DNA from: Octopus sinensis
Lineage: Eukaryota
Direction of reading: 5' to 3'
Assembly (NCBI RefSeq): GCF_006345805.1
Contig: NW_021825323.1
Location: forward strand, 620,001 to 684,000
DNA length: 64,000 bases
Under the pieces are notes generated by a model, which saw only the letters and a list, made by a program, of their open reading frames with translations, ran no database searches and had not been told where the DNA came from. The position numbers and the translations under genes are program-made. Shown here in pieces: positions 1,155 through 53,372 of this stretch; the stretch's first letter is position 1; the number at the start of each line of letters is the position of its first letter.

Positions 1155-3885
1155 GAATGAATGAATGAATGAATTTTTATTAACGGAAAGCCGAAAAAAG
1201 AGGGAGAAAGTTAATGAGACAACGTATGCCTCTTCTTCGTTGTTTCCCTCTTTTTTTTTTTTTTTTAAAAAACGTGGTGTTTGTGACGTGGTGTTCTTGT
1301 GAGCAAAATAAAAGAAAAATACTAATAACAATTTCACAATGAATTATTCAAAATCCAAGAAGAATTTTAAATCCCCGAATATCCAGGCTTCTGTGCCATC
1401 AATCTCGGCTTCTGTGCGCTCTATTTCGGCCTCTGTGCCTTCTATCTCGACCTCTGTACCATCTATCTCGGCCTCCGTGCCATCTATCCCGGCCTCCGTG
1501 CCATCTGTATGCCTGAGTATTGTACTATCAATACACAACTCAGAGCTCGATCTATTGAGATAGCAAAAACACTTTGTGGTTGTGAAATCGCTTGTAAGGC
1601 TCGAGTGACACGTCGTCACTCGGCGACTACGTTTTGGATTTCAAAAGTAAAGAGGATCTTTCGGCCTTTGTTGACTACTGTAAGTATACCCAGCCCTTTG
1701 GACCAAATGGCCACAAATCGAGGAGGCAAAGCCACGTGCGTCCGCGATAATGCTTAGGAACCTCCCGAACTGGGTTGGAACCGAGGAACTTGTAAAGTAT
1801 CGGTAAACTAATCTCTCCGGGGTTTTTGGTTGAGAGATTTTTCCGAAATGGAAGTCCACTTCCTCTGGCTAAAGTGACCATCCCCTCTAGGGGTGAAGCA
1901 GCCTCTCTCATGAATGGGGTTGAAAATTGGTTTCCGCGAAATTTTCTGTAGTTGGTACAAGCAACCAGACACGCAATGTTTCCGCTGCCAGCGTTTCGGA
2001 CATATCTCACGGTTCTGTAAAGAAAAAGTGAGATGTCTCATTTGTGAGGGCCCACATACCCGTTCGGAATGTCCTCTGACTGGAAACTACCCTACCAAGT
2101 GCATAAACTGTGGATCCTCAACACACATGGCCAACTATGGAGGATGTCCTGTTGTCAAGGAGCTTCTTAAAAAGAGATTACCTCGGAAAATACAGATCAG
2201 TCTACTAAACTGAAATTTGGACACATCTCCCGCAATGAAAATACAAGGAAAAACGATCAAAACTGAAACAGGAAACGTGAAAGTACAAAATACCTGGAAA
2301 GGATGGAACTTTAATAAAAGTACAAAATTCGTGGATGCTGAGGTTCAGACTGACGATATCTCTGAATCCATGTCAAACACTTTGAAAACTGCGACACCCA
2401 CTATATCTACGCAAAAACCAAAATTAAAGTTGGAACAAGGCGTAAACACAACCGAATATATGACTCAACTCAAAAAAGGCATGAAACTCGGGGACACTTC
2501 CAAATCAAACCGGGACAACCACCATGCAACATACAGGTGGCAGATGAAAAGACAAATGCAATTGAACATTTAAAGCAAAACTGGAGGACCTCCATCTTAA
2601 ATCGAAAACGACGACTAAAAAAACGTTTAAAAATTTACTGGAACTGGTGGCGCTCGTTATGGAGGACAGTCACCAAAACTTGACGAGATGAGCGTTTTTA
2701 CGCTTATCAACGCCCGGTCAATTCGGAAACGGGCTACGGAGCTAACCTACTTGGTTAGCTCGGTAAACATGGACACATTGGTTGTTAATGAAACGAAGCT
2801 TAAGGGAAATCAGCATCATAAAATCCATGGTTTTCAGTCGATTGATATCCCATGGCGACCTGACGCAGTGGCTGGCACTGGGACATCCATATATTATAAA
2901 GACAATCTGATGGTGAGGGACTTGAAAATCGTCGAACAAAATTTGTGCGAACTGATTACATTGAAACTACTAAATCCCTTGGATGGATATCTGTCGGAGC
3001 TATGTACTCCAAAGCAATGAAGAATTATCAAAATCTTATTGAAGAATTTTTCCAGAACAATGATAGAGGAATTCTAATAGGAGACCTTAACGCAAAACAC
3101 ACATCGTACGGATGTGCCAACACAAATTCGGACGGTAATATACTCCTCAGATTATCGGAGAACTGCGGTTTTAGTGTTTTGACCTCACGAGAACCAAACC
3201 ACTTCTCTTGTTATGGAGAGGATTGTATTGGAGTTTTCCTCGTATCGGCAGATGTTGTTCATCAATGCAGCATACCAAGGATTGAGATAAACATTGGTAG
3301 TGATCACCTACCTCAATCCTTGTGTATGCGAACATCATCTACGATATGCGAAGATCTGTTTATCGGATACGATACGTCTCGGACAATCTGGTCGGACCTT
3401 GAGGTATCAATGAAAAAGCATTTGACACCGTATCCAATACAAAACATCTCTTCGAATATACAAATTGAAAAACTTGATAAAATTCTCAGAGAAGCTATAC
3501 TGGACTTTCTCCGAAAATCTTCAATCAGGAAATACATCATGTCAAATACTAACAGAAAAACCCGGATTGACGAATCTTTGGGAAAACTTATAAAATGGAA
3601 GGGAAACCTTGAAAAGAAGCTAAGACGATGCAGTGACCCCATAGATCGTATTCGTCTTCGGGATAAGATTCGTACCGTGAAAATAGAGATAAATGATGTC
3701 GCAAAAAAACATTCAGACCTTGCTTGGAAGAGTCAATGCTCGAAACTGAATAAGAAAAACCCTCATTTTTGGAAGGTTTTCAACAGACTGAGTAATATGG
3801 AGAACAAAGGAGAAGAGATCCGACTAAAAACAACTGAAGGAATAGATATCCCGCTCGATGAAGTTCCCTCACATCTGCGAAGTCA
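1155..3885 (+). mobile_element. Jockey/I-group LINE: ORF1 and the APE half of ORF2, no RT domain; 3' tail inverted
   Basis: Three gag-like CCHC knuckles (CFRCQRFGHISRFC, CLICEGPHTRSEC, CINCGSSTHMANYGGC, 1914-2213). APE motifs INARS, NETKL, GDLNAKH and GSDHLP (2688-3320). 12-bp direct repeat ACTCGATTATAT at 1143-1154 and 3886-3897. AATAAA plus (ATTC)n tail on the minus strand at 1155-1181. Confidence 0.88.
1393..1509 (+). repeat. 21-bp tandem repeat (about 5.5 copies) encoding (VPSISAS)n at the LINE ORF1 N-terminus
   Basis: Units of consensus GTGCCATCTATCTCGGCCTCT read directly; matches ORF 1339-1563. Confidence 0.9.
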
Positions 3886-5266
3886 ACTCGATTATATATC
3901 TTTATTTTTTCAAAGATTATCGACTTCTAACATAAGATTTTAATTTTTCAAATATTAGCAATCAGCCATCGCCCCCCTGGCAGAAAAAATCGCCCCCCTA
4001 CCAAAAAAAATCGCCCCTAGGGGGCGAATCGCCCACCGTTGAGAACCACTGATTTATCATATGACTATTCACGCTGCAGCGTATTCATGGAGCATTCCAA
4101 CTTTTTTTAATATTCTAACTGAATGTTATAAAACCAGCTAAGAGAAATAGTGAACATTTTCAGTTGGAGATATAAGACTTGTTAATGATTTAAGAAACAT
4201 ATGGAATCAATATTCTTAGCTTGTTAATGTTCTTCGTAATATTGAATCCACTAACTTTTCTATCGAGAAGCATTACACTTTTCTGAAAATACAAAATATA
4301 AAGGAAGATAATTGTTAAATAAACGAATATATCATCATTGATGAGCAATTTTGTTTGGGAGAGAAGTCCCGGCCGACCAAGGACTTGATGGCTATCAACG
4401 GTAGAATACGTCACGAGATTGCCTTTATCAAAGCTTTTTGAAATTACAAATGACCGAGTGAGGTAGAAAAAAATTGGCTTATGAGATTCTACAAGTGTCG
4501 GACACGACTTGATTGGACAACCCAACTTAAACTCATCTCCACGTGTTTGTAATAACTCGGCTAGATTTTCATCGGTTGGAAGTACTTAGTTTTCACGTCT
4601 AATATTTATCGCCGAGTTCTGAGATTAGTCGTCGGATGTTTTCAATGACGAGATCTCCTCTTTTGTACCAGCAATTGACATAATCTCAAAATGGCAATGC
4701 TTTATGTGACTATCAATTGTATAAATGCCGTCGACTAATTTATACCATTTTGGGTTTAAAATGGGTCTTACAAAAAGCAAAGTAGAAAAATAAAATTATT
4801 TAATAAACAATGTTAGCATTATTTAACACCGATGGGGCCAATCTCTGAATTCTAGCAATTACGGTGTTGCTTAAAAATGGAATGATTATTCATAAAGAGT
4901 TAATCATAGTTTCTTCTACCTTTCGAAGTCAAAACTCGATAGTTTACAGAGCTTCTTTTCATAAGCGATTTGACCTCGAGAGGCGTAGTGATCAGAGTTA
5001 CTCTTAACAAAGAATCTTGATTGCTATCCTTCGCGTTAACAGTCAAACAATTTTCTCGGCACAAAAATGACTTTTTAATATCATTTGACAGTAAAATTAA
5101 ATTTTTAGAAAGAAAAAAATAATTATATAGTATATATCCTACTTTAAACGAAATATACATTATTTTGAAATATGACATATCCAAATTTTCTAATACTTAA
5201 ATTCAATTAAAAAATCAGAATTAATAATGAGAAAGAAATAAGATTAAAACAGAACTCCTCGAAAAT

Positions 5267-17344: not shown

Positions 17345-20300
17345 TATTAAGGGGGCGCTAGAATTTAATTATTCGAAATATTTTTGTTAATTTTTGTAAA
17401 TCATTATTGTATGTTTTTCTATTAATTTTAAATTCAAATTGTCTTGTGTGTAATTAAACAAAAAATTTACTGATAATAAATATTTATTAATTTTATTTAA
17501 TATTTTATAAACCATACAAATTCACTTCCTATATGTCTCATGTATCAAAAGGTCTTTACAAATGAAAGAATGAAGCTCTCAAGAATGCTAAATCATCTTA
17601 AGATTTGTCAGCCTGAGAAACTTGACGCAGATATTAATTATTTTTCCAATTTGAAATATAATTATGAAAATCGTCTTATGATTAATCAAATATTTACAAA
17701 AAATTCGAAGATACTTGGAAAAGGCCTATTAGCATCACACAAAATATCACAATTGATGGTGAAATCAGGAAAACCTCGTACTATTGGAGAGTTTTTAATA
17801 TCACCAGCTGTCAAAGAAGTGCTAAGTTTAATGGTTGATTGTGATTCTGAACAGATAATATGATTTTGAAGCTAAATTCATTTTTAACAAACATGGATAT
17901 CAACAATTCTAGATTACATAAAAAAATATCTTCAATTGTGGAATGAAGTTGAAACGCTTATAATAGAATTTCCTTCAACATATCTAGTTAAGAGGATTTA
18001 GTGAAGTCTCCAATATTTTGAACAAAATTATTATTTAACCCTGGGAACACAGGAAAGAGGAGTAGTAATCGTCTAATTGAGTGATCCCGGTGTCAGTGCG
18101 TCTCCTTTTATCTCTTCCTTGTCTCGAATTCTTAATAAACGTCCAAAGGGGGATGGTTTTTTCGAATTTCCTAGCACACTTCTCATAGGCAAGATATTCC
18201 TCTTCAAGGGGACTTCGGGTAGATCTGGCCATCGTTAAGAAGATGTGCTGTCTTTCTGTAAGATGGTCCATTAATTTTTTGACGTTGAGTGTATTTCTCA
18301 ATTCCAAAGTCAGCGTCATTTTGTCACGTTTCAGTAACATCCGTAAGCACTGATTCTATACGACTTCCAGTTTATTTTGTGCGGATATTGACAATGGCGT
18401 GATCCACAACGCACATGCGTGTTTAATTGTAGTTTGTATAATAATTCAAAATGAGGAATAGAAGATACTGGAGATCTAGCAAAAGCTTTGAGATTCGTGA
18501 AACCACTGACTCCACTTGATTTTTGAACGTCATTAATGGGTCGAATGTAACTCCAAGGATTGAAGGGTTCCTTTTAACTGGGATTAGTTGTCCATCCCAA
18601 GTTATTTTTGGGTCCAGTGCTGTATGTTTCCTGTATGAAGAGATAATCGTAGTGCTTGATTTCCCAGGTGATATCTTCATTCGGTTTTTGAGAAACCATG
18701 GGTTCATAAGGTTAATGGTCTCCTGAACTTTCCGTGTGGCTTCTTTGTAATCTTGATGTTTTGCTGCGATAATTAGATCGTCAGCGTATGATAAAAGGAT
18801 TGTATCTTCGTCGTTTGGATTTGAGAGGTTTTTTGTAAATAAATTGAACAGGATTGGTGATAAGGGGGATCCTTTTGGGACCCCGTTTGGGAGGTATCGT
18901 TGTTTTGATTTTCGGTTATTCATTATAACCTGTCCACTTCTGCCATTAAGGAAATTCGCCAGCCATATCTTCGGATGGATACCGATGGAGAAATTTTGGA
19001 TGTTGAAGTTTTCCTCGGTACTGAATCGAATGCTTTTTCGATATCCAGAGCGACTATTCCTCTTCAAGGGGACTTCGGGTAGATCTGGCCATCGTTAAGA
19101 AGATGTGCTGTCTTTCTGTAAGATGGTCCATTAATTTTTTGACGTTGAGTGTATTTCTCAATTCCAAAGTCAGCGTCATTTTGTCACGTTCAGTAAAATC
19201 CGTAAGCACTGATTCTATACGACTTCCAGTTTATTTTGTGCGGATATTGACAATGGCGTGATCCACAACGCACATGCGTGTTTAATTGTAGTTTGTATAA
19301 TAATTCAAAATGAGGAATAGAAGATACTGGAGATCTAGCAAAAGCTTTGAGATTCGTGAAACCACTGACTCCACTTGATTTTTGAACGTTATTAATGGGT
19401 CGAATGTAACTCCAAGGATTGAAGGGTTCCTTTTAACTGGGAATAGTTGTCCATCCCAAGTTATTTTTGGGTCCAGTGGTGTATGTTTCCTGTATGAAGA
19501 GATAATCGTAGTGCTTGATTTCCCAGGTGATATCTTCATTCGGTTTTTGAAAAACCATGGGTTCATAAGGTTAATGGTCTCCTGAACTTTCCGCGTGGCT
19601 TCTTTATAATCTTGATGTTTTGCTGCGATAATTAGATCGTCAGCGTATGATAAAAGGATTGTATCTTCGTCGTTTGGATTTGGGAGGTCTCTTGTAAATA
19701 AATTGAACAGGATTTGTGATAAGGCGGATCCTTGTGGGACCCCGTTTGGGAGGTATCGTTGTTTTGATTTTCGGTTATTCATTATAACCTGTCCACTTCT
19801 GCCATTAAGGAAATTCGCCAGCCATATCTTCGGATGGATACCGATGGAGAAAATTTTTGATGTTGAAGTTTTCCTCGGTACTGAATCGAATGCTTTTTCG
19901 ATATCCAGAGCGACTATTCCTCTTCAAGGGGACTTCGGGTAGATCTGGCCATCGTTAAGAAGATGTGCTGTCTTTCTGTAAGATGGTCCATTAATTTTTT
20001 GACGTTGAGTGTATTTCTCAATTCCAAAGTCAGCGTCATTTTGTCACGTTTCAGTAAAATCCGTAAGCACTGATTCTATACGACTTCCAGTTTATTTTGT
20101 GCGGATATTGACAATGGCGTGATCCACAACGCACATGCGTGTTTAATTGTAGTTTGTATAATAATTCAAAATGAGGAATAGAAGATACTGGAGATCTAGC
20201 AAAAGCTTTGAGATTCGTGAAACCACTGACTCCACTTGATTTTTGAACGTTATTAATGGGTCGAATGTAACTCCAAGGATTGAAGGGTTCCTTTTAACTG

Positions 20301-21187
20301 GAAATAGTTGTCCATCCCAAGTTATTTTTGGGTCCAGTGGTGTATGTTTCCTGTATGAAGAGACAATCGTAGTGCTTGATTTCCCAGGTGATATCTTCAT
20401 TCGGTTTTTGAAAAACCATGGGTTCATAAGGTTAATGGTCTCCTGAACTTTCCGCGTGGCTTCTTATAATCTTGATGTTTTGCTGCGATAATTAGATCGT
20501 CAGCGTATGATAAAAGGATTGTATCTTCGTCGTTTGGATTTGGGAGGTCTCTTGTAAATAAATTGAACAGGATTTGTGATAAGGCGGATCCTTGTGGGAC
20601 CCCGTTTGGGAGGTATCGTTGTTTTGATTTTCGGTTATTCATTATAACCTGTCCACTTCTGCCATTAAGGAAATTCGCCAGCCATATCTTCGGATAAATA
20701 CCGATGGAGAAAATTTTTGATGTTGAAGTTTTCCTCGGTACTGAATCGAATGCTTTTTCGATATCCAGAGCGACTAACACCGTTCTTTGATGTGGTTTTG
20801 AGTAGTTTCAGTTCATCTGAGATGAACTGAGTCAACTTCGTAAGATATGTAGAAGTTGAACGGTCTCTTCTGAATCCATGTGAGAATTAGCTTTTCCAGT
20901 GTTCTTGAGAGTCCACAAAGAATTGATACAGGACGATGAATCCGTGAATTTTGAACAAAAAAAGAAATAAATTACAAATTGTGAATAGAGGAGATTTGAA
21001 CTGATATAAAGAAACTAACAAATTTTCATCAGGTACAAGGCAGTCATTAAAATTTTTAAATAAAAAGTTTTGTTTAGGAATTTTTTTTTAATTCTAAAAA
21101 ATAATAGATAATAAGGGGGCGCTGAAATTTTAACCTTCAAAATTATTCAAAAGGGGCGCTGACTTAAAAAAGGTTAAGAACCAATGA
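17345..21187 (+). mobile_element. Second Buster-type hAT remnant, internally deleted and interrupted by a LINE; left TIR not found
   Basis: SHKISQLMVKSGKPRTIGEFLISPAVKEVL (17540-17863). The C-terminus FPSTYLV..RGFSEVSNILNK|KRNKLQIVNRGDL rejoins across the LINE. Right end GGTTAAGAACCAATG is followed by the nnnTAnnn octamer ATTTAAAG. Confidence 0.75.
18028..20947 (-). mobile_element. 5'-truncated LINE RT fragment with an internal segment of about 860 bp present in three tandem copies
   Basis: 13-bp TSD ATTTTGAACAAAA at 18015-18027 and 20948-20960; (TAA)n tail. RT motifs ALDIEKAFD, GVPQGS and YADD are repeated three times; ORF offsets are 859 and 861 bp. Confidence 0.92.
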
Positions 21188-43875: not shown

Positions 43876-45000
43876 TTCAACAGATAAAATTTGTTGTGGT
43901 TTAAAATATATATGTTATAACAGACTAAAATAAATATAAAAATGTAAAAAAAATAAAAATTTATTTTTATTAAAATATCAACTGGATACACTGCATATTT
44001 TAGTTGTGGTGGTGACGTCCAACTTTTCATTTTTGTCACTTATGCCTTCGAGTATCCCCACCTGATTATTTACCCTAATTATTAGGGTAAAGGCCTAATA
44101 CCAGAGGCCTAAATGAGTAGATAAAGAGGCATATCTATAGACCTCAAAAGATACCGATACTCAGTTTGCTAGTTTAAGCGACTTTGGGAACATAATGTTC
44201 ACAGGGACCTCAGAACTGTCACCACATTATTTAATTTAGCCAGCAAAAACCCGTCAGCGCACTATATCATCCAGATGTGCCAATCATTACGAAATTACAG
44301 AAGGAAATGAGGATCAAATCTGAAAATTTCTTATTTTACCGCTATAAATAAAGATTGTGAAGAATTTGTGAAATTTGACCTGATTTTAAATTCTGCTATC
44401 TGGTGGATGGGAGGAGAAGAAAGCAAATAAAAAATTTCCTGGGAATCGGGCGGCCAATGCTGAGAAAGAAGGATTCCTTGAATATGATTTTTTCATGGTC
44501 TCTGAGTCAATTGAGAAAATTCATGAAGGACGGTGACGATCTCAGAATCTTACATGTCTGGCAGGTCGGCGTGAAGGGATCTGGTGGAAAGGATACATAT
44601 GATTATAGATTTAATGATCTTATATATGTAGCTATTTCTCACTATGTTACGAACAGATGTTTGAAAATGCTCTCTTTTTTTCTTAACATTTTTGTTTGGC
44701 TATCAAAGGGGGTCACTGTGGTCCATTTTTTCACTTAATAAAGGAGAAATATAAAATCTATCGTTCCTTTCTAGGAAAAATTGGTCAACATGATGACTCT
44801 TCTTTCCTTCAAAGGAATTTGAAATCAATAATAAGCCTGCCATGAAAAGGATTGTCGGGATCAGGGGACCAATTATCATAACTAATTATTATCCTGATTT
44901 CGGGTTAAAAAATTAACAATAAATCTTTTGAACCACGAGGAAGCCAAACTTTCGTAAAATGAATTTGTATTTTACCTTGTCATTTTGTTTCTGTCATTAT

Positions 45001-46429
45001 TAGGCAAACCAAAAATTGCACTTTTTAATAAAAAAAATTGCAAAAATGATTTTAAATTGTAAAAAATTGCAAAAATAATTTTTTTTAATTGTAAACATTA
45101 CATTATGCAAAAAATAACGAAATTATTTATTGTAATAGGAAATCAAATATTCCTGAACATTTTCAGGTTTAAAGTTCCTCTCTTTACTAAGAATTTTCGT
45201 CAAAAGAGATATTGCCCTTTCGATAGATGCTGAACTTGCGCTACATTTTCTGAGATGTGAATAAACTTCTGGCGATAGATTCTTATTTGAGAATTCAAGA
45301 ATACTTAGTATTCCTGATTTCTCAAGCTTTTTTGATATATAGGATTTTATGTCGCATGGATCTGATGTAAAGTCTAGGGTGTTTAGATCACCATAAGCTG
45401 TTGCAATGGAGTAATCAAGCAATTCAGTATTTGAAATCATTTCAATTAATCCCAAATAATTTGAACTGATTTGGGTTAAGCTTGGAAACAACGTAGGATT
45501 ATTCACTGATTTTTTTGCCTAAAATAATTAAAAACTAAAACATTTTGTATTAAAACTCCATCTCCTTCAAATTCAGATACGATTTTAATAATTTCTGGAA
45601 GATTCTGGGAGTAATATTTTGCTGCTTTTAGCCAGCTTCCCCATCTTGTAACCACAACTTCGGGTGGATTTCCGATTCGTGAAAACATCTCCAAACGTCT
45701 CTCTTTGTTTTTGACTGTGGCAGCCTTTATAGACGAAATCAATTCATCAACATCTGCGAAGTATGCCTTAATCTTTAGAGCACAGTTGTGCAATAAATGT
45801 GACACGCAAGTCACGTGGAAAAGATTTTGGTATATCAATTTCATTGATGCCCCAGCTAAAATTAAATTTATTTATATATACCACTGGTCATATATCTCGC
45901 CCCATCTGTAACGAATAATATAAAATTTTCACGTTCAATAAAAATTTCTTTCTTTATTACTTTGTCCACCTCAACACAAATTGTTGAAGTAGTAGGCGGA
46001 TAATATAGATTGGTACACGATACTAAATGAAGATTTTTTGGAGTGGAGATTTTCCCAATCAAAGTAATTAAAAAACGAGTTCCATTGATTTGGGCTTCAT
46101 CACAACAAAAAAAACACATTCCCCACTATTGAATAACTTAAAAAAAACAACAGTAAATGAGTCTGAATGGTATTAATTTTATATTTTGATATTTCTTTAA
46201 CATTTAACCTGCAAGATGATTCAGATGGCAAAGGATATGTTTCCTGCTCAAAAAGCCGTATGAGGGAAGGATGTCTGATTTTATAAATTGGTATGTTTGC
46301 CTCCAAAAACGCTTGTGTTACTTTGATCCCCCAATCCTTTCGAGTATCCGTTATCGCCGAAAGAAATGTTTGTGAACTCTGAGATGAATTTGTCCATTCT
46401 ATAAATTTAATTCAAAGAAATACTGTGTG

Positions 46430-46470
<41 letters not shown>

Positions 46471-47134
46471 CTCTTAGAATTTTTTTTTTTTTTTTGAAAA
46501 CCACCAATAACTACAAGTTAATTAATTAAAAGCTTCAAGTGCGGGAAGCCGACGCGATCGAGAAAGAATTAGAGCGTACTATCGCAAGGGATATCCGCTC
46601 GAAAAACCATCTCGATTCGCGGGCGTCGCCTGTGATGGCAGACATGCGGGATCCGATCTCCTGAACGAAGCTGATTGCCTTACTGCCCAAGGAACCGGAA
46701 GTCTCAACCGCGAATGGAAGGAATTGGAACTTCTCCGTAAGTGAGGAGCGCATCAACAAAAAATTTTGTGTCACACCGTACAACATTGAGCAATTGGAGC
46801 AAAATAAATTCCTTCACTGTCAATACAAACTCGGGAATTTCTTTGCATAAAATGAAATTTTCTGTGACACTGTCCTTTTACCCATTACAACAAACAACTA
46901 AAACACGTTTTAATAATCTTTTACTTATAATTATATTATTTTTTAATAAAAAAATTTTTTTTTTAATTTAAAAAAATTGCAAAAAATTGTAAAATGACTA
47001 CAAAAAATTGCAAAAAATTGCAAATTTAAATCGAATAAAAATATAATTAAAATTAATGTCTATTCATTACTTTATTATTATCGAATTTTAATTAAATTAT
47101 ATTTAATTGCAAAAAATTGCAATTGGTTGCCCTA
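45001..47134 (-). mobile_element. hAT element copy 1 (CGGBP1/DUF659-like transposase, intron-containing, disrupted)
   Basis: Ends TAGGCAAACC and GGTTGCCCTA; subterminal AAATTGCA repeats. Motifs: BED-like FCSNC...DAH, TDGARYM, HVTCVSHLLH, TRWGSWL, SASIERAIS. Flanked by GTCATTAT on the left and GTAATAAC on the right. Confidence 0.92.
46431..46747 (-). mobile_element. CRE-type 3' fragment inserted in hAT copy 1, with a split poly(A) tail
   Basis: FLPFAVETSGSLGSKAISFVQEIG...ERISLAIVRSNSFSI; on the minus strand A16 + TTCTAAGAG + A40. Removing it restores the transposase codons VDAHTV; TSD of at most 2 bp (GC). Confidence 0.9.
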
Positions 47135-50100
47135 GTAATAACTTACGACAAAAATTGCGTAAAATAGGATGCAATTTTGCAAAGTCTATTGATATGAGGA
47201 TATGGGGGTACTTGAGATTATGTAATTAAATTGCGTAATAAATTACGTAATATATAATGAAATTTGGGTGTTCCGAAGATATAAGGATACGGGGTACTTG
47301 ACATTATGTAATAAATTGAGTAATAAATTACGTGATATATTATGCAAATTTGAATGGTCCGTAGATGTGAGGATATTAGGGTACTTGAGATTATGTAATA
47401 AATTGGGTAATAAATTGCGTAATATATTATGCAATTTAACAAGTTCCTTAGATATGATATGGGGGTACTTGAGATTATGTAATAAATTTCGTAATAAACT
47501 ATGTAATATATTATGCAATTTTGGAAGGTCCGTAGATATAAGGATACGGGGTACTTGAGATTATGTAATAAATTGAGTAATAAATGGCGTAATATATTAT
47601 GCAATTTTGGAAGGTTTAAGATATGAGGATGTTGGGGTACTTGAGATTATGTAATAAATTGCGTAATAAATTACGTAATATATTATGCAATTTTGGAAAT
47701 TGCGTAGATGTGAGTATTTGGAGTACTTGAGATTATGTAATAAATTGCGTAATATATTATGTAATATATTACCTAATTTTGGAAATTCCGTTGATGTGAG
47801 TATTTTGAGTACTTGAGATTATGTAATAACTTACGACAAAAATTGCGTAAAATAGGATGCAATTTTGCAAGGTCTATTGATATGAGGATATGGGGGTACT
47901 TGAGATTATGTAATAAATTGCGTAATAAATTACGTAATATATTATGCAATTTTGGAAGGTCCGTAGATATAAGGATACGGGGTTCTTGAGATTATGTAAT
48001 AAATTGAGTAATAAATTACGTGATATATTATGCAATTTTGAATGGTCCGTGGATGTGAGGATATTGGGGTACTTGAGATTATGTAATAAATTGGGTAATA
48101 AATTGCGTAATATATTATGCAATTTAACAAGTTCCTTAGATATGATATGGGGGTACTTGACATTATGTAATAAATTTCGTAATAAATGGCGTAATTTATT
48201 ATGCAATTTTGGAAGGTCCAAGATATGAGGATGTTGGGGTACTTGAGATTATGTAATAAATTGCGTAATAAATTACGTAATATATTACGCAATTTTGGAA
48301 ATTGCGTAGATGTGAGTATTTGGAATACTTGAGATTATGTAATAAATTGCGTAATAAATTATGTAATATATTATGCAATTTTGGAAGGTCCGTAGATATA
48401 AGGATACGGGGTACTTGAGATTATGTAATAAATTGAGTAATAAATGGCGTAATATATTATGCAATTGTGGAAGGTTTAAGATATGAGGATGTTGGGGTAC
48501 TTGAGATTATGTAATAAATTGCGTAATAAATTACGTAATATATTATGCAATTTTGGAAATTGCGTAGATGTGATTATTTGGAGTACTTGAGATTATGTAA
48601 TAACTTACGAGAAAAATTGCGTAAAATAGGATCCAACTTTGCAAGGACTATTAATATGAGGATATGGGGGTACTTGAGATTATTTAATAAATTGCGTAAT
48701 AAATTACGTAATATATTATGCAATTTTGGAAAGTCCGTAGATATAAGGATACGGGGTACTTGAGATTATGTAATAAATTGAGTAATAAATTACGTGATAT
48801 ATTATGCAAATTTGAATGGTCCGTAGATGTGAGGATATTGGGGTACTTGAGATTATGTAATAAATTGGGTAATAAATTGCGTAATATATTATGTAATATA
48901 TTACCTAATTTTGGAAATTGCGTAGATGTGAGTATTTGGAGTACTTGAGATTATGTAATAACTTACGAGAAAAATTGCGTAAAATAGGATCCAATTTTGC
49001 AAGGTCTATTAATATGAGGATATGGGGGTACTTGAGATTATTTAATAAATTGCGTAATAAATTACGTAATATATTATGCAATTTTGGAAAGTCCGTAGAT
49101 ATAAGGATACGGGGTACTTGAGATTATGTAATAAATTGAGTAATAAATTACGTGATATATTATGCAAATTTGAATGGTCCGTAGATGTGAGGATATTGGG
49201 GTACTTGAGATTATGTAATAAATTGGGTAATAAATTGCGTAATATATTATGTAATATATTACCTAATTTTGGAAATTGCGTAGATGTGAGTATTTGGAGT
49301 ACTTGAGATTATGTAATAACTTACGAGAAAAATTGCGTAAAATAGGATCCAATTTTGCAAGGTCTATTAATATGAGGATATGGGGGTACTTGAGATTATT
49401 TAATAAATTGCGTAATAAATTACGTAATATATTATGCAATTTTGGAAAGTCCGTAGATATAAGGATACGGGGTACTTAAGATTATGTAATAAATTGAGTA
49501 ATAAATTACGTGATATATTATGCAATTTTGAATGGTCCGTAGATGTGAGGATATTAGGGTACTTGAGATTATGTAATAAATTGGGTAATAAATTGTGTAA
49601 TATATTATGTAATATATTACCTAATTTTGGAAATTGCGTAGATGTGAGTATTTGGAGTACTTGAGATTATGTAATAACTTACGAGAAAAATTGCGTAAAA
49701 TAGGATCCAATTTTGCAAGGTCTATTAATATGAGGATATGGGGGTACTTGAGATTATTTAATAAATTGCGTAATAAATTACGTAATATATTATGCAATTT
49801 TGGAAATTGCGTAGATGTGATTATTTGGAGTACTTGAGATTATGTAATAAATTGCGTAATATATTATGTAATATATTACCTAATTTTGGAAATTCCGTTG
49901 ATGTGAGTATTTTGAGTACTTGAGATTATGTAATAACTTACGACAAAAATTGCGTAAAATAGGATGCAATTTTGCAAGGTCTATAGATATGAGGATATGG
50001 GGGTACTTGAGATTATGTATGTAATAAATTGCGTAATAAATTACGTAATATATTATGCAATTTTGGAAGGTCCGTAGATAAAAGGATACGGGGTACTTGA

Positions 50101-50299
50101 GATTATGTAATAAATTGAGTAATAAATTACGTGATATATTATGCAAATTTGAATGGTCCGTAGATGTGAGGATATTGGGGTACTTGAGATTATGTAATAA
50201 ATTGGGTAATAAATTGCGTAATATATTATGTAATATATTACCTAATTTTGGAAATTGCGTAGATATGAGTATTTGGAGTACTTGAGATTATGTAATAAC
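47135..50299. repeat. Satellite array: about 36 monomers of 86-87 bp (some 98 bp), built from 12-bp subunits, with a 358-bp higher-order repeat
   Basis: Monomer GTACTTGAGATTATGTAATAAATTGCGTAATAAATTACGTAATATATTATGCAATTTTGG...AGAT(A/G)TGAGGAT...GGG. Higher-order repeat starts at 48583, 48941, 49299 and 49657. Confidence 0.97.
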
Positions 50300-51778
50300 T
50301 AGGGCAACCAAAAAATTGCACTTTTTAATAAAAAAAATTGCAAAAATGAATTTTAAAAATTGTAAAAAATTGCAAAAATAATTTTTTTTAATTGTAAACA
50401 TTACATTATGCAAAAAATTAACGAAATTATTTATTGTAATAGGAAATCAAATATTCCTGAACATTTTCAGGTTTAAAGTTCCTCTCTTTACTAAGAATTT
50501 TCGTCAAAAGAGATATTGCCCTTTCGATAGATGCTGAACTTGCGCTACATTTTCTGAGATGTGAATAAACTTCTGGCGATAGATTCTTATTGAGAATTCA
50601 AGAATACTTAGTATTCCTGATTTCTCAAGCTTTTTTGATATATAGGATTTTATGTCGCATGGATCTGATGTAAAGTCTAGGGTGTTTAGATCACCATAAG
50701 CTGTTGCAATGGAGTAATCAAGCAATTCAGTATTTGAAATCATTTCAATTAATCCCAAATAATTTGAACTGATTTGGGTTAAGCTTGGAAACAACGTAGG
50801 ATTATTCACTGATTTTTTGCCTAAAATAATAAAAACTAAAACATTTTGTATTAAAACTCCATCTCCTTCAAATTCAGATACGATTTTAATAATTTCTGGA
50901 AGATTCTGGGAGTAATATTTTGCTGCTTTTAGCCAGCTTCCCCATCTTGTAACCACAACTTCGGGTGGATTTCCGATTCGTGAAAACATCTCCAAACGTC
51001 TCTTGTTTTTGACTGTGGCAGCCTTTATAGACGAAATCAATTCATCAACATCTGCGAAGTATGCCTTAATCTTTAGAGCACAGTTGTGCAATAAATGTGA
51101 CACGCAAGTCACGTGGAAAAGATTTTGGTATATCAATTTCATTGATGCCCCAGCTAAAATTAAATTTATTTATATATACCACTGGTCATATATCTCGCCC
51201 CATCTGTAACGAATAATATAAAATTTTCACGTTCAATAGAAAATTTCTTTATTACTTTGTCCACCTCAACACAAATTGTTGAAGTAGTAGGCGGATAATA
51301 TAGATTGGTACACGATACTAAATGAAGATTTTTTGGAGTGGAGATTTTCCCAATCAAAGTAATTAAAAAACGAGTTCCATTGATTTGGGCTTCATCACAA
51401 ACAAAAAAAACACATTCCCCACTATTGAATAACTTAAAAAAAACAACAGTAAATGAGTCTGAATGGTATTAATTTTATATTTTGATATTTCTTTAACATT
51501 TAACCTGCAAGATGATTCAGATGGCAAAGGATATGTTTCCTGCTCAAAAAGCCGTATGAGTTTATAATCTTTTACTTATAATTATATTATTTTTTAATAA
51601 AAATTTTTTTTTTAATTTAAAAAAATTGCAAAAAATTGTAAAATGACTACAAAAAATTGCAAATTGCAATTTAATCGAATAAAAATATAATTAAAATTAA
51701 TGTCTATTCATTACTTTATTATTTAATCGAATTTTAATTAAATTATTTTAATTGCAAAAAATTGCAATTGTTTCCCTA
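50300..51778 (-). mobile_element. hAT element copy 2, near-identical to copy 1 but missing the segment equivalent to about 46265-46910
   Basis: Ends TAGGGCAACC and GTTTCCCTA. Flanked by GTAATAAC (50292-50299) and GTCATTAT (51779-51786). Confidence 0.92.
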
Positions 51779-52208
51779 GTCATTATATTTCCAGTTTTTA
51801 TTAGGATAAAATTCCACGAGCTTTTCAAACTTCTTTAGGATAGGAGGCATTCTTTTTAAATTAACTCAGGCACAAATATGAGAAAAGATCTCATTTATTA
51901 TTATTATTATTTAAGCCAAACAAAATCACCGTCTTAACCATTAACTAACACGTTCAGGTGATTCCGACACTTCTCAACAGTCGAGCCATCATTTCACGAT
52001 GTTCAGACCGTGACCCCACACACTTTCTGTATGTACGAAAACTATGAATAAACTATTAACTATGAATTGAAGAAAACATCCATTAGCAGACTATGACTAA
52101 GATGTTAAGACCGTCATTTTTTACAAATCTCTAAAATTTATATCAAAATTAATTAATTCTAATTTAAATTTAATTTTATTCAAAAGGATACTATTAATAG
52201 GGCAATCC

Positions 52209-53372
52209 ATGTGGTTGTTTCTTCTCATCCAATTTTTATTGATCTCAACGAGGTCTTTAACCGTATTTTTCATTGAAATAAGTTTAAAGAATAAAGATAA
52301 AAATTACAAAAAACTACTATCCTCTATCGACGAAAAAGGAATCATAAGTTTATCAGACGAACACTATCAACTAATAAACACACAAGATAAAAACTATTCT
52401 ATACTAATATTATTTACTTCAACACATCCAGACCATCAATGTACTTATTGCAAGTATTTAAAGCACAAAGTACATATATTTAGGTCAGCTGTCGGCGAAT
52501 TACAGGTCGCATTAGAGTCATTTCGAAAAGAAAACGTATTTTTCAATGAAACATTTTTTGCCAAGGCCGATTTTGTAAAAGCTCGTCAATTTTTTGTTTG
52601 GGTTAATTATTTAATGAACATAATGTTTTAGAAAAACATTCAGAGTATTCCTCAGTATATATTTATATTTAGTTCCAACTCGGAGAAAACATTCAGGTTT
52701 TATAAACTTTCTAACTTTAAGGAATTTCAAAGCTCACGAAATTGGTCGATTTATTGCGTTGCAAACTGGCAATAAAGTTTAACTAAAATAAACTATTTTC
52801 CAGTTTAAGCTCCACAGGCCACCAAAATATGAAATTATTGTATTTTTGTTTGTTGCGAGCGTGTTTTTTATGGCTGTCCTTTATCTCCAGGAAGGACTTT
52901 TCGAGCGGCTAAGAAGTAAAAAACTTTGGCAGATTTTTTTGACAGTAAAACTGTTTTTTCAGTTTCAGTTGTTAATTCCTTTTTTGACATCTGGTTTTTT
53001 GGCTGTTTTTATCCGCGGAGCTCCTCTGCTTGCTGCGTATCAAGATGGAACTCCTGTACAGTCTTGAATCATATTTTCTAGATGTTTGTATATCCGAATG
53101 GAGATTTCCAATTGGGATTCGAAGCTGTTCTTATATTTGCGATTTGTTTGATTTAGAAATTATTTTTTTAGATATTCTTTCTTCTTTATCCTTGGCTCTT
53201 GTAGTTTATCCGGAAAGTTTTCCCATGTTTAAGGGGACGAAAGGTATTTGGTGGTTTGATTTGGTTTATAGCAATCATTTTTGGAATTACTTTCTTTTCA
53301 TTGATATTTTCTTTGTTACTTCAGGTTGTCAGGGCAAAAATGTCATACTACCCTTTCAAGTTTGATTCTTGA
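52209..53372 (+). CDS. Oligosaccharyltransferase OST3/OST6 subunit (MAGT1/TUSC3-like)
   Basis: Signal peptide; NYSILILFT...HQCTYC thioredoxin-like CxxC; several TM segments; C-terminus FSLLLQVVRAKMSYYPF. Confidence 0.85.

Follow-up and report, generated by a model that had tools for sequence, protein, structure and literature searches.

How satellites enter gene-rich euchromatin is an open question; transport by transposons and reintegration of circles are usually proposed, for the most part on the strength of association and of the detection of circles. Circles can integrate by a single crossover of the Campbell type, and in bacterial composite transposons the cargo lies between two IS copies (IS-cargo-IS). 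Macrotransposons and composite insertions of maize Ac were reportedly described by Huang and Dooner in 2008. They are also the subject of Zhang et al. 2014 (PMC4270019) and of Sharma and Peterson 2022 (PMC9910405). Sproul et al. 2020 (PMC7403614) proposed a model of eccDNA reintegration or interlocus gene conversion for the euchromatic Rsp-like and 1.688 satellites of the Drosophila simulans clade. In that model, an incomplete repeat at the start of an array and another at its end, adding up to a whole monomer, are expected from circle excision and reintegration. The Cast satellites of Tribolium castaneum lie in gene-rich regions, and both transposition of TEs and insertion of eccDNA were proposed as their routes (bioRxiv 10.1101/2023.04.24.538079).

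The locus analyzed here is a satellite array held between two copies of a hAT-like element. If the assembly is correct, its structure suggests that the satellite block came in by recombining with an older copy of the transposon that was resident at the site.

Nested target-site duplications around a satellite array

The composite is found in a 64-kb stretch of DNA (the window), has a total length of 6,794 bp and shows the order X-TE-Y-satellite-Y-TE-X, where X and Y are two different target-site duplications (TSDs) (Table 1). X bounds the composite on both sides and is present on the plus strand of the window at these two positions only. Y adjoins both inner element ends and bounds 3,149 bp of satellite; of the seven further copies in the window, six are internal to the satellite and the seventh, at 4549, is unrelated. 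A previous sequence-only reading had reported the four bracketing octamers and their nested order. The octamers were exact at every coordinate that it gave, and the nested order was correct, the flanks being swapped between copies A and B.

Table 1. Features of the composite at 44993-51786 (window coordinates)
Feature	Position	Strand	Remarks
Outer TSD X, left, GTCATTAT	44993-45000		Exact match to 51779-51786; fits family motif nTnATnAn
hAT-like copy A, 2,134 bp	45001-47134	-	Outer (left) end decayed, inner (right) end consensus; transposase remnants on minus strand
Private nested insertion in copy A	46447-46744	-	5'-truncated interspersed repeat with long poly(A) end; boundaries from BLAST to consensus
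Inner TSD Y, GTAATAAC, adjoining right end of A	47135-47142		Exact
Satellite array	47143-50291	+	86-bp monomers, seven blocks
Inner TSD Y, GTAATAAC, adjoining left end of B	50292-50299		Exact
hAT-like copy B, 1,479 bp	50300-51778	-	Inner (left) part consensus, private internal deletion, outer (right) end decayed
Outer TSD X, right, GTCATTAT	51779-51786		Exact match to 44993-45000

Copies A and B are direct repeats with a block-by-block identity of 98-100%; their outward-pointing termini, left in A and right in B, each border on X. Small changes separating the copies number more than 25, in addition to a 298-bp insertion and a 359-bp deletion, and no derived variant is common to both. Of the 136 pairs formed by 17 independent family insertions whose TSDs are intact, one shared an octamer, and the chance of two octamer coincidences in a nested arrangement is about 5e-5. 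The nested octamer pattern is beyond chance.

TRF analysis of the array gave a period of 86 with 35.3 copies, together with higher-order periods of 173 and 358 bp. The blocks (688, 774, 358, 358, 358, 259 and 362 bp) each begin with a GTAATAAC monomer, and the octamer occupies one fixed monomer position, six times inside the array. A virtual circle junction, composed of the array's last 80 nt, GTAATAAC and its first 80 nt, was identical to the six internal GTAATAAC junctions at 154-163 of 168 positions. End and start thus make a normal monomer junction across one Y, and the array is a circular permutation, as in the eccDNA model. This end-to-start closure had been noticed in the sequence-only reading and is borne out by the best internal junction (163/168); its further claim that no satellite lies beyond the elements holds for the whole window.

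Satellite matches elsewhere number 545, on at least 12 other contigs, several of which are composed of this repeat alone. With its head-to-tail monomers, the array is a genuine multi-locus satellite of the genome. Derivation of the satellite from the element was rejected, as consensus and array have no BLAST similarity. The closest array, on contig C10167, reaches the end of its contig. Compared over 25609-40194 of C10167 (minus a 956-bp gap), the window blocks are 90-99.7% identical to its units and not collinear with them; a direct copy was rejected, the best collinear identity being 88.7%. Since window units are up to 99.7% identical to C10167 units, the transfer or exchange was probably recent.

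NAT10-like exons lie upstream of the composite and an OST3/OST6-family exon about 0.3-0.4 kb downstream, which makes the site genic. As this exon is so close to the block, an effect on the OST3/OST6-family gene is possible. The nested TSDs and the circularly permuted array set the order of events at one locus: the element entered the satellite first, and element plus satellite then entered a site holding or receiving an element copy.

The hAT-like element family

The element represents a young, hAT-like family with some 50 copies and a consensus of 1,848 bp; five of these copies are clustered on the contig of the window. A TAG-initiated TIR of 12 bp, TAGGGCAACCAA, is present at both consensus ends and AATTGCAAAAAA-type motifs recur subterminally, so that the family has the short TIR with YAG start and the subterminal repeats of hAT elements. 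The 8-bp flanks of other genomic copies, a check suggested by the sequence-only reading, were tabulated for 22 full-length copies and were identical in 19, off by a 1-bp indel in two and unmatched in one. Because flanks match in these copies, A and B can be taken as a true swapped-flank pair. The TSDs follow the motif nTnATnAn, with A4 and T5 in 17 of 17 and T2 and A7 in 15 of 17, and both X and Y fit it. These TSDs, the motif and the TIR support the initial assignment to hAT.

Transposases of the hAT superfamily have an RNase-H-like DDE core and a C-terminal dimerisation domain. Single ORF pieces of the element gave no match in the Pfam search, and the joined minus-strand pieces matched DUF659 at E 0.0035 and Dimer_Tnp_hAT at E 0.11, neither of which reaches the Pfam cut-off. 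The transposase remnant has 53 homologues with identity up to 43%, and their alignment retains the invariant columns D, DE, D, CxxH, W..W and V-E-R-S-F-S; the homologues appear to carry the hAT C-terminal signature. DUF659, carried by homologues of the minus-strand ORF pieces of copy A, was matched in all 22 homologues tested; Dimer_Tnp_hAT was matched in three of the 22, and weakly. PDB sequence searches returned no transposase, Hermes included.

A second copy, on contig C8852, lies inside a related 74-bp array with the TSD TTTATCAC, showing that the family inserts into this satellite family. A close pair on C8851 was rejected as a composite: each insertion has its own TSD, the two arose independently and the DNA separating them is not satellite. 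Elsewhere, C2502 is the only element-bearing contig with this satellite, which lies more than 170 kb from its element copies. The assembly contains duplicated contigs, L002/L003 and L021/L030 having TSDs in common.

Mosaic decay of the copies and proposed origin of the composite

Copy A is 98.2-98.6% identical to the family consensus. In copy B, identity is 99.76% over consensus positions 1-1264 and 94.2% over 1624-1848, and this jump in divergence falls at the junction of its private deletion (consensus 1265-1623, window 51560/51561), which is in no other copy. The outer TIR of A reads TAGGCAAACC against TAGGGCAACC in the consensus, and that of B ends in TTGTTTCCCTA against TTGGTTGCCCTA, whereas the inner TIRs of both copies are perfect. 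The outer tips carry about 6 (A, 1-130) and about 10 (B, 1624-1848) changes from consensus and the homologous inner tips 0 (B, 1-130) and 2 (A, 1624-1848), a ratio of 16:2 over homologous segments (two-sided binomial p ~0.001). Most of the counted changes are homopolymer indels of 1 bp, and consensus errors may account for some of these. The bodies of A and B have 5 and 3 small changes per 1,144 bp, and family copies with comparably decayed tips have 9-17 body changes, subterminal regions varying 3-4 times more than bodies in all copies. Since the bodies are near-consensus despite the decayed tips, the interiors look replaced by young sequence, as gap repair predicts. The outer tips were rejected as a distinct subfamily: their variants are private and the best other copy is 94-95% identical. 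The private insertion in copy A, whose poly(A) appears as poly(T) on the plus strand, is absent from 22 other copies; the inserted part has a 100% match at at least 39 other loci and its junction with the element occurs nowhere else in the genome.

We give an even chance to an origin in which homologous recombination, rather than one transposition, brought together two hAT insertions of independent origin. The old-outer, young-inner mosaic fits an old resident at GTCATTAT that recombined with a younger, satellite-borne copy, on a circle or a tandem template. Swapped flanks together with this pattern of decay are what integration by homology would leave, and misassembly would give the same pattern. 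The sequence-only reading had offered two routes, recombination of a satellite circle carrying one element into a chromosomal copy, or amplification within an array followed by joint transposition of the outer ends; the data lean to the first, the outer ends being far more decayed than the inner.

In the proposed order of events, to which TSD X points at the outset, an element (TE1) would have inserted at GTCATTAT between the NAT10-like and OST3/OST6-like genes and aged in place, both TIRs and subterminal regions decaying, with the 359-bp internal deletion perhaps already present. A younger family copy (TE2) entered the 86-bp satellite elsewhere, within a GTAATAAC monomer, as TSD Y and the monomer register show. 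A piece with TE2 and about 3.1 kb of satellite may then have become a recombination partner, in the simplest form as a circle excised by exchange between in-register satellite repeats flanking TE2, alternatively as a tandem TE2-satellite-TE2 stretch in the donor array. Repair of a break or gap in TE1 from TE2 with crossover (Campbell-type integration, double-strand-gap repair) would give X-(TE1 left tip + TE2 rest)-Y-satellite-Y-(TE2 left part + TE1 right tip)-X. A plain single crossover was rejected, as the old body of TE1 would persist in A or B; for this reason a wide gap or a conversion tract must be added. This last step would need no transposase, the dispersed copy acting only as a homology landing pad that admits the satellite to a genic region. 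Local threefold amplification of the 358-bp unit and entry of a retroposon into copy A would have followed.

Both unique flanks, searched genome-wide, matched the window only, yielding no haplotig, empty site or solo-TE1 allele; the right flank also matches a SINE-like repeat. Probes of 106 nt over both TE/Y/satellite junctions found no second full-length match in the 2.72-Gb assembly, an absence that is weak evidence because satellite regions are incompletely assembled. With no donor, solo-TE1 allele or empty site in the assembly, the two-insertion history is drawn from a single locus. In animals, homology-driven reintegration of circles has, to our knowledge, seldom been documented. We tentatively consider, while leaning against it, that the locus is a natural base-resolved record of a circle of satellite and transposon that recombined homologously with a dispersed copy of the same transposon and so returned to a chromosome. 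If so, dispersed transposon families that insert into satellites would give them homology landing pads throughout gene-rich DNA, a general, transposase-independent seeding of satellites into euchromatin with nested TSDs as its diagnostic mark. Should reads confirm the structure, X-TE-Y-array-Y-TE-X is a search pattern applicable to any long-read genome.

Insertion of the whole 6.8 kb at GTCATTAT in one step, with X as its own TSD, appears unlikely. Element and satellite could have been tandemly duplicated in an array and mobilised by the two outermost ends as an Ac-style macrotransposon, or a composite insertion could have arisen by alternative (sister-chromatid or reversed-ends) transposition with re-replication, the broken satellite flanks being rejoined in register by homologous recombination. 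Maize Ac forms exactly such structures, bounded by an 8-bp TSD and joined internally either by NHEJ or by homologous recombination of repeats (PMC4270019; PMC9910405), and the architecture here agrees: two outward termini lie within a single TSD, the donor flanks (Y and satellite) are inside, X fits the target motif, the orientation of A and B poses no contradiction, and the five family copies on this contig are compatible with local hopping. However, A and B are equal-age sisters under every such model and their homologous segments should have decayed equally, an expectation at odds with the 16:2 ratio. The outer TIRs, which must have been functional, are both mutated and the unused inner TIRs both perfect; as these are present-day states, they lower the macrotransposon claim rather than exclude it. 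Nor do A and B have the common derived variants of sisters, and the TE/Y/satellite junction of a donor site is found nowhere else in the assembly.

An assembly artefact is less probable still. The true genome would then have X-TE1-X here and satellite-Y-TE2-Y-satellite elsewhere, the assembler having walked from X-left through the element, a satellite loop and the element again to X-right. Such a path uses real junctions only and gives the exact mosaic, reads of TE1 supplying the outer segments and reads of TE2 the inner ones; overlaps within satellites are prone to error, duplicated contigs occur in this assembly, the C10167 array runs off its contig, and a second TE/Y/satellite junction would be missing were those reads consumed here. 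Against this, the assembler would have had to make three or more false joins in register within 7 kb, the array is not a copy of C10167 (88.7% at best), and the insertion, the deletion and the small changes separating A from B show that they are not one collapsed node. The window is without N and its 65-nt homopolymer and structured 3.1-kb array point to long reads, able to span an element of 1.5-2.1 kb.

We know of no report of transposition of inner element ends into a circular target. In such an event the right end of a replicated resident element would insert from one chromatid, together with the left end from its sister, into a free satellite circle at GTAATAAC, stitching it between two sister copies. 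This would give X-TE-Y-circle-Y-TE-X without a second element, Y being a true TSD that formed at this locus, and agrees with the intact inner TIRs, the fit of GTAATAAC to the target motif and the reversed-ends and sister-chromatid reactions documented for Ac (PMC4270019), but it again makes A and B sisters, leaves the asymmetry of decay unexplained and is very improbable.

Comparison with known systems

As in maize Ac (PMC4270019; PMC9910405), hAT elements or termini bracket host DNA within one outer 8-bp TSD, DNA flanking the donor lies inside, and the internal junction can form by homologous recombination between repeats. Here, on the other hand, satellite DNA of an animal-type genome is carried, a matching TSD of their own marks the inner ends, and the decayed ends are the outer ones, arguing against mobilisation by them. 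The new, short, circularly permuted euchromatic array, with seeding proposed through homology to a target repeat, resembles the satellites of the Drosophila simulans clade (PMC7403614); there the landing pad is another satellite and the junctions show microhomology, whereas here it is a dispersed transposon and two nested TSDs record the order. Cast of Tribolium castaneum likewise forms arrays within gene-rich DNA. That study gave statistical association and Southern evidence for circles without a diagnostic-junction locus; the present analysis gives one such locus, for which circles are proposed. Direct duplication of a homologous element flanks the inserted DNA, as in Campbell integration and IS composites, and would be reversible by pop-out between the copies; unlike in those systems, the element is a eukaryotic cut-and-paste transposon and the integrating circle is a putative one.

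Structure of the composite and its satellite array

The sequence-only reading had proposed an outer octamer, an element and an inner octamer leading into satellite DNA, followed by the same parts in reverse order. This nested arrangement was borne out, the octamers and elements being found where that reading had placed them. Across the 64-kb window, the + strand holds the outer octamer GTCATTAT (X) at its two TSD positions only. Beyond the two inner TSDs, the inner octamer GTAATAAC (Y) was found in the window six times within the array, at a constant monomer position, and once at an unrelated position, 4549.

Features of the composite and of the neighbouring genes (window coordinates)
Feature	Position	Sequence or remark
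NAT10-like exons	36.7-38.8 kb	one side of composite
Outer TSD X, left	44993-45000	GTCATTAT
Copy A	45001-47134	start TAGGCAAACC, end GGTTGCCCTA
Inner TSD Y, left	47135-47142	GTAATAAC
Tandem satellite array	47143-50291	
Inner TSD Y, right	50292-50299	GTAATAAC
Copy B	50300-51778	start TAGGGCAACC, end TTGTTTCCCTA
Outer TSD X, right	51779-51786	GTCATTAT
Element-satellite junctions		...GAGATTATGTAATAAC / TAGGGCAACC (into copy B); GGTTGCCCTA / GTAATAAC TTACGA (out of copy A)
OST3/OST6-family exon	52101-52631	composite ends ~0.3-0.4 kb upstream of exon
Spectrin-repeat and EF-hand gene		after OST3/OST6-family exon

TRF resolved an 86-bp monomer in 35.3 copies with higher-order periods of 173 and 358 bp, and cutting the array at every Y gave seven blocks of 688, 774, 358, 358, 358, 259 and 362 bp. 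When the last 80 nt, one Y and the first 80 nt were joined, 154-163 of 168 positions were identical to the six internal junctions, confirming that the satellite closes end to start across one Y and marking the array as cleanly circularly permuted. The claim that no satellite lies outside the elements also held, BLAST matches of the 358-bp unit in the window being confined to 47.1-50.3 kb.

At least 12 other contigs carry the 358-bp unit (545 matches), and several of them consist solely of this repeat. The most similar array (C10167:27060-40194) is flanked on one side by unique sequence, the boundary being free of any element, and is cut off by the end of its contig. Blocks of the window array were 90-99.7% identical to single units of this array; collinear identity of the whole array reached only 88.7% at best, making the two arrays relatives rather than one a copy of the other.

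The element family and its target sites

Genome-wide searches covered the 2.72-Gb assembly (13,516 contigs). Copy B as query gave 80 matches and searches with both tips gave 53-55 candidate places, for a family of about 50 copies, mostly 98-100% identical. Leaving A and B aside, 22 further copies of full or almost full length supplied a 1,848-bp consensus. The 8-bp flanks of these copies, whose tabulation had been proposed from the sequence, were identical in 19 of 22, differed by a 1-bp indel in two and were truly unmatched in one. The latter, a full-length copy (L015, C10781:45455-49718) with CTAATTAA as its left and GTGATGAT as its right flank, offers a second candidate for recombination between family copies.

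Seventeen independent TSDs defined the target motif nTnATnAn (A4 and T5 in 17/17, T2 and A7 in 15/17), which both GTCATTAT and GTAATAAC match. Only one of 136 pairs of independent insertions shared an octamer, so that two coincidences in nested order would have a probability of about 5e-5.

The minus strand of the element contains four ORF pieces which, when joined, matched 53 proteins; these are about 400-480 aa long and reach 43% identity. The fragments by themselves scored under the Pfam thresholds. DUF659 was found in 22/22 homologues tested and the hAT dimerisation domain was matched weakly in 3/22, while the homologue alignment keeps the columns D, DE, D, CxxH, W..W and VERSFS. A sequence search for a solved hAT structure gave no match. 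From its TSD, TIR and transposase motifs the element is classed as hAT-like.

One family copy (L026, C8852:147054-151002) is 5'-truncated (1501-2787 of the locus) and adjoins satellite at 2788-3949. Its intact right end lies, oppositely oriented, within a related 74-bp satellite, with TSD TTTATCAC, indicating that the family does insert into such satellite, the monomers of which are rich in nTnATnAn words. A lone satellite-like monomer is present at 331-430 of this locus, and retroelement-like coding sequence adjoins the truncated element end.

The 1.29-Mb contig C1794, of which the window is 620001-684000, holds five of the approximately 50 family members, deletion derivatives included, at about 250.0, 484.0, 583.8, 665.0 and 670.3 kb; the two at 665.0 and 670.3 kb are window positions 44993-47142 and 50300-51786. 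This clustering suggests local hopping, a behaviour known from Ac. Two of the five, at 250 kb (~0.6 kb) and 484 kb (~0.9 kb), resemble MITE-like deletion derivatives. Elsewhere, head-to-tail partial copies (C1200:16615-17753; element segments 1-422, 1-533 and 1297-1479) may have formed as a tandem or through aberrant transposition.

Age of the element ends and origin of the composite

Private to copy A is an insert of about 298 bp (46447-46744) whose minus strand has a long poly(A) end. At least 39 other loci are 100% identical to the inserted part, and its junction with the element is unique in the genome. A 65-nt T run with one interruption (46431-46495) is the poly(A) tail of this nested repeat, which inserted at a TTTTAAA site of the element consensus, as expected for endonuclease-primed retroposition. 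Copy B has a private deletion (consensus 1265-1623) found in no other family copy.

Tip variation was 3-4 times body variation in all copies, and the comparison was therefore confined to homologous segments. Over the first 130 bp copy A showed about 6 differences from the consensus and copy B none; copy B had 10 (3 substitutions and 7 indels) in its last 218 bp and copy A 2 in its last 225 bp. The outer tips thus carried 16 changes and the inner tips 2 (two-sided binomial p ~0.001). Most of these are 1-bp homopolymer indels; errors in the consensus may account for some of them, and not all of the roughly 45 small differences in the two elements need be real. The argument from asymmetry holds whatever caused the changes. 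Likewise, the two outer TIRs are mutated and the two inner ones perfect. The outer-tip variants are private, the best other copy being 94-95% identical to either tip, the level of consensus-type copies. In the bodies (121-1264) copies A and B had 5 and 3 small changes, and four copies with comparably decayed tips (L021, L022, L024 and L030) had 9-17.

At the level of the assembled sequence, Y at both inner ends and the array register show that an element inserted into a Y-containing monomer, and the pair of X octamers at the outer ends records a hAT insertion there. Had an old resident copy at X recombined with a younger family copy sitting in satellite, decayed ends at X and pristine ends at Y would be expected. 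A plain single crossover should leave the old body in one copy, yet neither body looks old, and this misfit leads us to favour gap repair with crossover: the resident copy, once broken or gapped, would be repaired from the younger one, both interiors would derive from the latter and the old copy would contribute the outer tips only. In keeping with such a mosaic, divergence in copy B jumps at the junction of its private deletion. The template may have been a circle or a tandem element-satellite-element stretch; with a circle a single donor element could suffice and the permutation would be directly explained.

A repeat-graph walk over two real loci (X-left, element, satellite loop, element, X-right) would yield the same mosaic. 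Such a misassembly is unlikely: copies A and B are set apart by an insertion of 298 bp, a deletion of 359 bp and more than 25 small changes; the walk would need three in-register false joins; and the window, with no N and a structured 3.1-kb array, suggests reads long enough to span a 2-kb element. Three transposase-only routes were considered: mobilisation of a tandem element-satellite unit as a macrotransposon; alternative transposition with re-replication, giving a composite insertion as in maize (PMC9910405, PMC4270019); and entry of the inner ends into a satellite circle. In each of them A and B would be equally old sister copies, and none predicts decayed ends at X with pristine ends at Y. 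Of the two routes offered by the sequence-only reading, recombination with a chromosomal copy is thus favoured over joint transposition of the outer ends.

That reading had also asked that an empty site (one GTCATTAT) and a single-element allele be looked for in other individuals. Searches of the assembly with both unique flanks found neither; each flank is single-copy, indicating that the assembly holds no haplotig, empty site or solo allele of this locus, and both element-Y-satellite junctions had no occurrence elsewhere in it. Two contig pairs (L002/L003 on C10059 and C4561; L021/L030 on C6125 and C2775) share the same insertion, TSD and flanks, one pair differing by an internal deletion, which indicates that the assembly holds uncollapsed haplotypes or duplicated contigs.

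Genomic setting and known systems

The gene-dense euchromatin described for this region holds for the window, with its NAT10-like, OST3/OST6 and spectrin-repeat/EF-hand genes. Directly right of the composite lies a SINE-like interspersed repeat of about 145 bp (51893-52037) with at least 40 genome copies, 94-99% identical. At 18131-20800 three head-to-tail copies (98-100% identical) of a unit of about 860 bp, from a retroelement reverse-transcriptase fragment, are a transposon-derived tandem repeat in the making.

A full-text literature search found no locus at which two nested TSDs enclose a satellite array that is circularly permuted. The ingredients of the composite, which is a single locus and presumes a correct assembly, are known. 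hAT macrotransposons and composite insertions have been described (PMC9910405, PMC4270019), as have satellite-transposon networks in molluscs, transposon- or circle-mediated satellite spread in Tribolium (bioRxiv 10.1101/2023.04.24.538079) and satellite spread by circle reintegration and interlocus conversion (PMC7403614). The homology-seeded spread proposed for Rsp-like satellites is similar, except that here the landing pad would be a transposon (PMC7403614).
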